Source: Fimbriosthenelais zetlandica
Taxonomy: Eukaryota
Assembly (NCBI GenBank): GCA_977030845.1
Contig: OZ365111.1
Location: 14,012,001 to 14,076,000, forward strand
Length of the DNA stretch: 64,000 bases
Direction: 5' to 3'
The position numbers and the translations under genes are program-made. The notes below the pieces were generated by a model that was given only the letters and a program-made list of their open reading frames with translations, was not told the DNA's origin and did no database searches. Numbering within the stretch: the first letter of the stretch is position 1; each line of letters starts with the position of its first letter. Positions 1,942-34,475 of the stretch are shown in pieces.

Positions 1942-1947
1942 TTTATT
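1942..1947 (-). terminator. AATAAA polyadenylation signal downstream of histone H1
   Basis: Plus-strand tttatt reads AATAAA on the H1 strand, about 250 nt past the distal stem-loop. Confidence 0.4.
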
Positions 1948-2012: not shown

Positions 2013-2174
2013 AACCTAGCTAAACTAATGGGAAGGTGGTGGGATAGAATACAGAAGTTGTAAAGAAAGAATGAATAGTAAAATTGGGATGGGAAGTCGA
2101 AAAGATTGTGGAGAATAAGTTTTAAAGGAGAGAAGGATGGGAGAAGAGTATGGGGATTGTTTCACGAATAATTT

Positions 2175-2183
2175 CACTCATTT
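2175..2183 (-). terminator. Candidate histone downstream element (U7 snRNP site)
   Basis: Purine-rich AAATGAGTG on the minus strand, starting 11 nt after the distal stem-loop. This is the spacing typical of HDEs. Confidence 0.45.
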
Positions 2184-2194
2184 GAGAGTGTGGT

Positions 2195-2210
2195 GGTCTT
2201 GATAAAGACC
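2195..2210 (-). terminator. Histone 3' stem-loop 2 (distal)
   Basis: GGTCTT-TATC-AAGACC, a perfect 6-bp stem with 4-nt loop. Preceded by CCAAC and followed by ACCAC. Confidence 0.75.
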
Positions 2211-2218
2211 GTTGGGAT

Positions 2219-2234
2219 GGCCCTGAGAAGGGCC
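2219..2234 (-). terminator. Histone 3' stem-loop 1 (proximal)
   Basis: GGCCCT-TCTC-AGGGCC, a perfect 6-bp stem with 4-nt loop. Preceded by CCAAAC and followed by ATCCC. It lies 25 nt after the stop codon. Confidence 0.9.
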
Positions 2235-2259
2235 GTTTGGTTTATGTAGGGTTGATTAT

Positions 2260-2859
2260 TTACTTCTTGGCGGCTTTCTTGGCAGCTGGCTTCTTGGCCG
2301 CGGGTTTCTTAGCTGCAGGCTTCTTGGCTGCGGGTTTCTTGGCAGCTTTGGGCTTGGCAGTCTTCTTTGGGGTCTTGGGCTTCTTGGCAGCAGTCTTGGG
2401 CTTGGCAACCTTCTTCTCTGCTGTCTTCTTGGCAGACTTCTTGGGAGTCTTGGGCTTCTTGGCAGCCTTCTTGGGGGTCTTAGGCTTCTTGGCCTTCTTG
2501 GGAGTTGCCTTCTTCTTGGGAGTTACCTTCTTCTCCTTCTTGGGTTTCTCTTCCTTGCCCATCTTGAAGGATCCGGCAGCGCCGGTTCCCTTGGTCTGGA
2601 CAAGTTTGCCTGAAGTGACGGCAGACTTGAGGTACTTCTTGATGAAAGGAGCCAGCTTGAGGACATCACACTTGTAGTTGGCGGCGATGTACTTCTTGAT
2701 GGCAGCGAGGGATGATCCCTTCCTATCCTTGAGGGCCTTGATGGCAGCTGGTACCATGGTGGCGACTGGGGGATGAGCTGGGGCAACCTTGGGTTTCTTG
2801 GCCTTGGTAGCCTTCTTGGCGGGTGCTGGGGCAGCAGGGGCGGCAGCGGTCTCGGCCAT
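2260..2859 (-). CDS. H1: Linker histone H1 (199 aa, intronless)
   Basis: Ala/Pro/Lys-rich N-tail. Winged-helix globular domain [34 protein letters not shown]...[16 protein letters not shown]. Lys-rich C-tail with five TPKK motifs and AAKKP repeats. Followed by histone stem-loops. Confidence 0.98.
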
Positions 2860-2929: not shown

Positions 2930-3061
2930 CGAGTGATGACCTACTGCATCTGTCCCATATTTATACTCACAGGCGTCCAGAGCGCGGACGTCGGTGAAAG
3001 CACCCGTCCGCGGCCCATGGGGAGTGCCTATATAAACGCTGCATATCCCAAACTTGTGTTT
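2930..3061 (-). promoter_or_regulatory. H1 proximal promoter
   Basis: On the minus strand: H1/AC box AAACACA 3061-3055, GC-rich box 3016-3001, H4-box-like TCACCGACGTCCGC 2997-2984, TATAAATA 2965-2958, and cap-like TCATCAC near 2939-2933. Confidence 0.8.
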
Positions 3062-33818: not shown

Positions 33819-34475
33819 TCATAATATGACACAGCGATTTCTTCGTAAAGCATCTTGGACCCTTACGGACGCTGGCTTGTGGCCAAAGTCTATATAATCA
33901 ATAGCTTTCATCAGTTCTTTGAAGAGAAGCACTATATGCCAGTTATACTTGGCAGAACACTCGACATAGCCACACTTCCACTGTTTCTTCACTATATTCG
34001 CGACTTCCCTCCGTGGCACTCCTCTGTCTTCACTCAAGTCATGTTTGTTTCCCACCACAAATAGAGGCACATCGTGCATGTTTTTACTTTCTACCATCTG
34101 CTCTCTGATCGTTTTGATGTACTGGAAGCTCTCCTCAGACGTTATGTCATAGACCAGAATGTAAGCTGTGGCATTCCTCAGACCGTAGCCTCGAAAGTCT
34201 GTCCACTCATAGAGCGAGTTGACTGGGAAGTATGGAATCACTGGACAGTCAATGATCTTCACCTCGTACATGTGGTCGTTGATGATAATGCTGGGGTAGT
34301 AACACTGGCGTTTCTCCGTGGCTATGTACTCGTCAGTGAACTGATTACAGACAAATTGTTGAATTATTGACGATTTACCTACCCCTGGACTGCCAAGGAC
34401 TGCGATCTTGACCTTTTGCATTTCCGGTTCAGCTGAGGACGCTGAGTTCGCCATTTTGGTATATGGAGTCGTCAT
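33819..34475 (-). CDS. RASL10: Ras-like protein family member 10 (RASL10A/B-like small GTPase), single coding exon
   Basis: G1 GSPGVGKS, atypical G3 DCP, G4 NKHD, G5 CSAK. RASL10-diagnostic stretches FPVNSLYEW, WKCGYVECSAKYNWHI.LLF.EL and ALRRNRC, and CaaX CVIL. The second ATG (34454, aaaATGG) has the better context. Confidence 0.95.
   Translation of the reverse strand: MTTPYTKMANSASSAEPEMQKVKIAVLGSPGVGKSSIIQQFVCNQFTDEYIATEKRQCYYPSIIINDHMYEVKIIDCPVIPYFPVNSLYEWTDFRGYGLRNATAYILVYDITSEESFQYIKTIREQMVESKNMHDVPLFVVGNKHDLSEDRGVPRREVANIVKKQWKCGYVECSAKYNWHIVLLFKELMKAIDYIDFGHKPASVRVQDALRRNRCVIL

Follow-up and report, generated by a model that had tools for sequence, protein, structure and literature searches.

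The 64,000-nucleotide stretch of Fimbriosthenelais zetlandica DNA analysed here (contig OZ365111.1, positions 14,012,001 to 14,076,000; hereafter the window) carries a histone H1 gene with two tandem SLBP-type hairpins at its 3' end. In the reading that we consider probable, this is a solitary gene of the replication-dependent type, the distal hairpin is the one that is processed, and the proximal hairpin is kept as a second SLBP site. Part of the same reading, and probable with it, is that the H1 family of this lineage as a whole has conserved the two-hairpin layout under selection.

The H1 gene and its 3' end

The H1 gene was found on the minus strand of the window (2260-2859) as an intact, intronless ORF of 199 aa plus a TAA stop codon (2260-2262). 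A profile search assigned the product to Pfam Linker_histone (PF00538, E 2.3e-29, residues 29-100), giving it the winged-helix globular domain between lysine-rich tails that is characteristic of an H1. It has 2455 relatives among H1 proteins, and an exact-sequence look-up of the protein found no database record. A TATA box (TATAAA, 2960-2965, minus strand) is located 106 nt upstream of the ATG, and an H1 box (AAACACA, 3055-3061, minus strand) lies a further 96 nt upstream of the TATA box. This 96-nt spacing recurs in the paralogues L056, L057 and L059, and most paralogues have a TATA box at a comparable position. No core histone gene was present among the ORFs of the 64-kb window, indicating that the H1 is a solitary gene. 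An intronless 218-aa ORF at 33819-34475 on the same strand, with a G1-like motif (GSPGVGKS), may encode a small Ras-family GTPase, which it resembles by eye.

Read on the minus strand, the 3' end begins with the flank CCAAAC (2235-2240), taken directly from the sequence, which provides the 5' flanking adenines of the proximal hairpin (hairpin 1; GGCCCT TCTC AGGGCC, 2219-2234, minus strand), a 6-bp stem with a 4-nt loop. An 8-nt spacer, ATCCCAAC (2211-2218, minus strand), flanks hairpin 1 on the 3' side and hairpin 2 on the 5' side, and it leads into this distal hairpin (GGTCTT TATC AAGACC, 2195-2210, minus strand), the presumed processing stem-loop. The 3' flank ACCAC (2190-2194, minus strand) is the predicted zone of U7-directed cleavage, a position that follows from established knowledge of such signals, and downstream of it come ACTCTC and then AAATGAGTG. 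The nearest AATAAA (1942-1947, minus strand), a possible fallback polyadenylation signal, is 247 nt past the distal stem. Both hairpins of the window have a perfect 6-4-6 layout. The sequence-only reading of this DNA had proposed two SLBP-type stem-loops at the 3' end of an H1 gene, and this was borne out: the minus-strand letters were as claimed, the ORF is an H1 by Pfam, and the metazoan consensus GGYYYTTHTHARRRCC had two exact matches in the 64-kb window, both at the H1 3' end, against an expectation of 0.01, a number reached in none of 100 shuffles.

The minimum-energy fold of the 98-nt 3' UTR includes both hairpins (-24.9 kcal/mol, z -6.6), and none of 200 shuffles folded as well. A small third hairpin (CACTC/GAGTG, 2175-2190, minus strand) is present in the minimum-energy fold, where it would mask the upstream half of the histone downstream element (HDE). 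Pairing like that of the third hairpin, with other letters (TACTCT/AGAGTA and CACTCT/AGAGTG), was noticed by eye in the paralogues L057-L059.

In a comparison with the Rfam Histone3 model (RF00032), which had been put forward as a check, both hairpins could be aligned, the distal one at 30.9 bits together with the downstream part and the proximal one at 19.6 bits as a hairpin only, but both fell below the gathering score of 34 bits. Since the core-histone stem-loops of the same genome (L066-L068, on C14, C31 and C34) scored 21.7-30.1 bits and so are below 34 bits as well, this cut-off does not discriminate in this lineage; standard annotation would miss those core-histone stem-loops. The sequence-only reading had also described a U at loop position 1 as invariant, which had to be abandoned because the core histone loops in this genome begin with C.

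Distribution of the hairpin pair

The 447-Mb genome contains 11 H1-like loci. A histone-type 3' end was found at eight of them, every one with two hairpins, and two of the 11 copies are without any stem-loop. At a divergent 221-aa H1 (L063, C11:43400799-43401257, 48% identical), the stem-loop site just downstream consists of a 5-bp GGTCC/GGACC stem around a second GTGGG/CCCAC hairpin, followed by a normal ACCA and HDE; this structure gives the impression of a stem-loop whose loop has taken up an insertion. Two-hairpin H1 genes were found in other assemblies as well, three in ERZ25767047 and one in ERZ26168297, and together with the eight genes of this genome they make up the set of 12 genes that was compared. 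Recurrence in eight loci and in two further assemblies led us to reject an assembly artefact.

The core H2A, H3 and H4 genes of the same genome, which are arranged in 8-kb tandem repeats, have a single hairpin. Single-hairpin H1 genes were found outside the lineage in the nemertean Lineus longissimus, in ERZ25069853 (three genes) and in a TARA plankton organism. Forty-one H1 loci were taken from metagenome contigs, of which 30 had a stem-loop, and it was single in all 30. Eight of the metagenome H1 genes (L075-L079, L084, L088 and L094) have as their sole stem-loop one with an A-U first pair in place of G-C, for example AGCCCT...AGGGCT. Among histones, the hairpin pair is H1-specific and clade-specific.

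Conservation and selection on both stems

Over the codons of the globular domain, the window gene differs from the other H1 genes with two hairpins by a dS of 0.55-1.6, a divergence at which a neutral 16-mer would be scrambled. When the 12 genes were aligned from the stop codon to the HDE, the UTR before hairpin 1 was diverged and the spacer ranged from 6 to 15 nt in length; the conserved islands were the two hairpins, the ACCA flank and a downstream block. The spacer begins with A in 11 of the 12 genes and ends in AAC, AAA or ACC. All 12 genes have the 6-4-6 layout, provided that one G-U pair and one mismatch are allowed in the proximal stem. An alignment of H1 3' UTRs had been suggested as a way of looking for compensatory changes, and these were found in both stems. 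Pairing was retained in 97% of cells of the proximal stem, with compensatory changes at positions 1 (G-C to A-U) and 3 (C-G to U-A), and in 100% of cells of the distal stem, with compensatory changes at positions 3 and 5; for each stem, none of 500 shuffles reached the score. The change at distal position 5, giving a T-A pair, was found in the window gene alone. The H1 protein tree (17 H1s) left 10 of 14 inner branches unresolved, so the count of independent compensatory events is uncertain.

The distal hairpin is canonical in all 12 genes. The exceptions in the proximal stem are four genes with an A-U first pair, one gene that combines a G-U pair with a loop starting in C, and two near-identical H1 copies, a recently duplicated pair, with a C-A mismatch. 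That A-U, G-U and mismatch variants are limited to the proximal hairpin indicates a looser constraint there than on the distal one. At stem position 3, C-G predominates in the proximal hairpins and U-A in the distal ones, across the paralogues and in another assembly. This lasting difference shows that the two hairpins have long been separate, and copying of one from the other does not account for their maintenance.

It could be argued that the proximal hairpin is a functionless, neutral leftover of the tandem duplication of stem-loop units, which is frequent in this genome. Near-identical units on non-histone genes, four of 25 nt at L027 and three of 31 nt at L030, show that such duplications arise readily, and the two H1 copies with a mismatched proximal stem would agree with a loss of function. 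We consider this explanation very improbable, because the pair is present in 12 of 12 genes from three assemblies at the dS values given above, and because the compensatory changes, the diverged neighbouring UTR and the old distinction between the two stems all speak against it. The same observations uphold the earlier claim that stems which differ and yet stay paired reflect selection and not a fresh duplication. Judged from the sequences, both hairpins are maintained by selection.

HDE register and a candidate U7 snRNA

Under the established ruler model of U7-directed cleavage, the cut takes place a few bases after the stem-loop. The HDE consensus AAGAATGAT, with up to two mismatches, was used to examine 64 stem-loop arrays of this genome. 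Eighteen single arrays had a match 12-14 nt past the stem, and 14 multi-hairpin arrays had one 12-13 nt past their last stem; measured from the first hairpin of these 14, the HDE was 35-44 nt away. In the window gene the HDE (AAATGAGTGAAATTATTCGT, 2164-2183, minus strand) is at offset 13 from the distal stem, compared with 12-14 in the 32 other arrays. The distal hairpin therefore has an HDE at a fixed short distance and the proximal one does not, in agreement with the sequence-only reading, which had assigned the HDE spacing to the distal hairpin. A second motif, TTATTCGT, common to many genes, is located a few bases beyond the HDE core.

Attempts to find U7 with general models gave no acceptable candidate. 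The best match from Rfam (29.1 bits) came from a long inverted repeat, to which miRNA models match as well, and two Sm-site patterns gave counts equal to those of a reversed-pattern control, with no candidate having a proper terminal hairpin. A third pattern was derived from the HDE itself, as the complement of AAGAATGAT plus TTATTCGT, and 100 of its 135 matches were examined. Among the matches listed were two tandem copies of a candidate U7, approximately 855 nt apart on the minus strand (C1:60161123-60161192 and 60161978-60162047), a pair that the Rfam U7 model missed. Each has the 5' end ACGAAUAAUUAUCAUUCUU, the Sm-like site AUUUCUCCAG, an 11-bp terminal hairpin and a CCCCA end. The arms of the terminal hairpin differ between the copies with pairing kept. 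The search pattern itself called for no Sm-like site, terminal hairpin, CCCCA end or duplication. These tandem C1 loci are candidate U7 snRNA genes.

Approximately 19 nt of the candidate's 5' end are complementary to the bipartite HDE (AAGAATGAT..TTATTCGT). The first 20 nt of the candidate, which was itself found with an HDE-derived pattern, gave duplexes of -10.2 to -16.5 kcal/mol with the region after the distal stem in all H1 genes (z -5.5 to -10.1 against shuffles), and the window gene formed the strongest (-16.5 kcal/mol, z -10.1). Core-histone and non-histone examples pair with the candidate in the same register. The sequence-only reading had expected AAATGAGTG to be complementary to the 5' end of U7. 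Pairing was obtained with a candidate U7 that came from an HDE-derived search, and the predicted element is longer, as the best pairing in the window runs past AAATGAGTG over the next 11 nt (AAATTATTCGT), which places the HDE at approximately 2164-2183.

As an HDE follows only the distal hairpin, the ruler model predicts that the cut falls after the distal stem and that the mRNA should keep both hairpins. The distal hairpin and the HDE 12-14 nt after it would form an ordinary U7/SLBP cleavage signal, the pre-mRNA would be cut a few bases past the distal hairpin, and the proximal hairpin, lacking an HDE of its own, would stay inside the mature mRNA. A different use of the pair, which we think unlikely, is that it provides two alternative or successive 3' ends: the distal hairpin would be trimmed in decay or removed by a second mode of cleavage, and the proximal end re-protected by SLBP and 3'hExo, giving the message a 'second life'. 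The spacer after the proximal stem does resemble a mature 3' flank, with A in 11 of 12 genes and AC in 8 of 12, and the arrays of 2-4 units on other genes fit an effect that depends on copy number, but without an HDE after the proximal hairpin, primary cleavage at that point is unlikely by the ruler model.

Hairpin arrays were also seen on non-histone ORFs, with 2-4 hairpins and an HDE only after the last one: L027 (C13:14812190-14812310), L030 (C1:8039511-8039600), L008, L037, L038/L039, L001, L004 and L011. Most of these ORFs belong to a protein family of approximately 100-165 aa with the motif ...RYQRA...RYNLRLRL.T.EG.R.MF..YA... The near-identical units of L027 (25-nt period) and L030 (31-nt period) suggest recent tandem duplication. 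A 437-aa ORF with several near-identical copies (L013, C1:31340967, also L007, L014 and L015), which by eye may be a Harbinger/PIF-type transposase, has downstream of it the stem-loop GGTCCT TTTA AGGACC together with an HDE-like element, for which the duplex with the candidate U7 comes to -12.8 kcal/mol.

The proximal hairpin as a putative SLBP site

SLBP makes a single base-specific contact, with a G that must be present at stem position 2, and the minimal site with full affinity is the stem-loop with two adenines on its 5' side and one on its 3' side (PMC10388802). The G at position 2 is present in both hairpins of all 12 genes, and its partner C in the proximal stem is invariant too. In the proximal hairpin an A is found at -2 in 12 of 12 genes, at -3 in 11 and on the 3' side in 11, and all 12 have the loop U3 and the top U-A pair. 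The flanking adenines of the distal hairpin are much the same, the base at -1 often being C in this lineage, and in 8 of the 12 genes the distal stem is followed by ACCA. Since the invariant features of the proximal hairpin match the published requirements, it looks like an SLBP site, and most likely serves as a second one. Hairpins with an A-U base are the sole stem-loop in the eight metagenome H1 genes described above, so the A-U variant is consistent with a normally functioning histone stem-loop.

The SLBP of this genome retains the TPNK motif and an SRRSWD segment with the equivalent of Arg181. A single locus for the SLBP RNA-binding domain was found in the 447 Mb, a number that is a lower bound as the search was heuristic. 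The sequence-only reading had raised the idea that a separate SLBP paralogue, for example oocyte versus somatic, serves each hairpin. Frogs have two SLBPs, and the consistent position-3 difference between the two stems would suit such a division, but the one locus recovered by the heuristic search tells against it, and we regard it as the least probable of the explanations considered.

It is also conceivable, if rather doubtful, that selection on the proximal hairpin concerns its structure and not SLBP binding: it could block 3'-to-5' decay, be bound by a different protein, or help the RNA to fold so that the distal hairpin and the HDE are properly presented. Pairing is retained where A-U replaces the GG...CC base, which suggests that the stem weighs more than the exact canonical sequence, and the predicted third hairpin, able to mask the HDE, may hint at the importance of local folding. 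For one histone 3' UTR, SLBP is reported to induce a rearrangement through which U7 can anchor (PMC1635294). Against a purely structural role, the invariant positions (G2, loop U3, the top U-A pair and the adenines on either side of the stem) coincide exactly with those that SLBP is reported to read, and the A-U-based hairpin, as the sole stem-loop of eight H1 genes elsewhere, is compatible with normal function.

A second SLBP site is the leading reading of the proximal hairpin, followed by a structural role or one in successive 3' ends, with a neutral leftover being unlikely. From the positions of the hairpins and the HDE we infer the cleavage site and the retention of both hairpins in the mRNA, and from sequence features the binding of SLBP to the proximal hairpin. 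On the finished message the proximal hairpin would most likely be bound as a second SLBP site, which would add to the stability or the translation of the H1 mRNA.

A broader and more tentative proposal is that the histone stem-loop is a 3' module of variable copy number in this genome, with a fixed ancient pair on H1 and 1-4 units elsewhere, and that the number of SLBP sites sets how long or how well a message is used; we see this as possible but not likely. In one version of it, the hairpins could be consumed in turn during 3'-to-5' decay, so that the lifetime of H1 mRNA in S phase would exceed that of the core histones and linker-to-core stoichiometry would be tuned in this way. A conserved, H1-specific hairpin pair would be a natural experiment on whether SLBP dosage per message matters, on what 3'hExo and decay factors do at a second, internal site, and on how cells balance H1 with core histone output. 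For annotation it is a warning that, in this group, histone 3' ends are under-called by single-hit models and by the Rfam cut-off. The candidate U7, with its long bipartite HDE, would be a protostome example for a sparsely sampled RNA family.

Comparison with known systems

Replication-dependent histone mRNAs are described as ending in a conserved, SLBP-bound stem-loop (PMC10388802). Natural tandem histone stem-loops were not found in the literature searched, which included a 2026 survey of histone 3'-end processing, a 2025 paper on annelid histones and a paper on cnidarian histones; a precedent may exist in older papers on annelid or mollusc H1 genes. In its hairpins the H1 3' end of the window resembles the histone 3' end represented by RF00032, having a 6-bp stem, a 4-nt loop, G2, loop U3, 5' adenines and a 3' ACCA. 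As in that system, a purine-rich element lies at a constant distance, here 12-14 nt, and it can pair with the candidate U7. Like replication-dependent histone genes, the window H1 is intronless and has an H1 box and a TATA box. It differs from the RF00032 signal, which has one hairpin, in having two in tandem, 6-15 nt apart, on the stem-loop-bearing H1 genes of the lineage. Its HDE is also long and bipartite (the core plus TTATTCGT), and its scores are below the gathering cut-off, as are those of the genome's own core histones.

An extra structure near the processing signal is known from the human H4-12 pre-mRNA (PMC1635294). There the 3' UTR is reported to be rearranged by SLBP, enabling U7 anchoring, and the small hairpin predicted in the window, which covers the upstream half of the HDE, is similar in this respect. 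H4-12, however, has one SLBP hairpin, and its extra structure is the downstream region and not a second SLBP-type site.

Within the genome, the core histone genes (tandem repeats of approximately 8 kb on C14, C31 and C34) share with H1 the GGCCCT/AGGGCC stem type, the HDE register and the candidate U7, but they have a single hairpin with a C-first loop (CATC, CCTA or CATA) and lie in tandem repeats, whereas H1 is solitary. The non-histone genes with histone-type 3' ends carry the same cassette of stem-loop and HDE, some with two, three or four hairpins; their units are often near-identical at a fixed period, suggesting recent duplication, whereas the H1 pair is old and differentiated. Taken together with these systems, the H1 3' unit is best read, from its sequence features, as an ordinary histone stem-loop with its HDE, the part that differs being a hairpin pair that is fixed, old and specific to H1.
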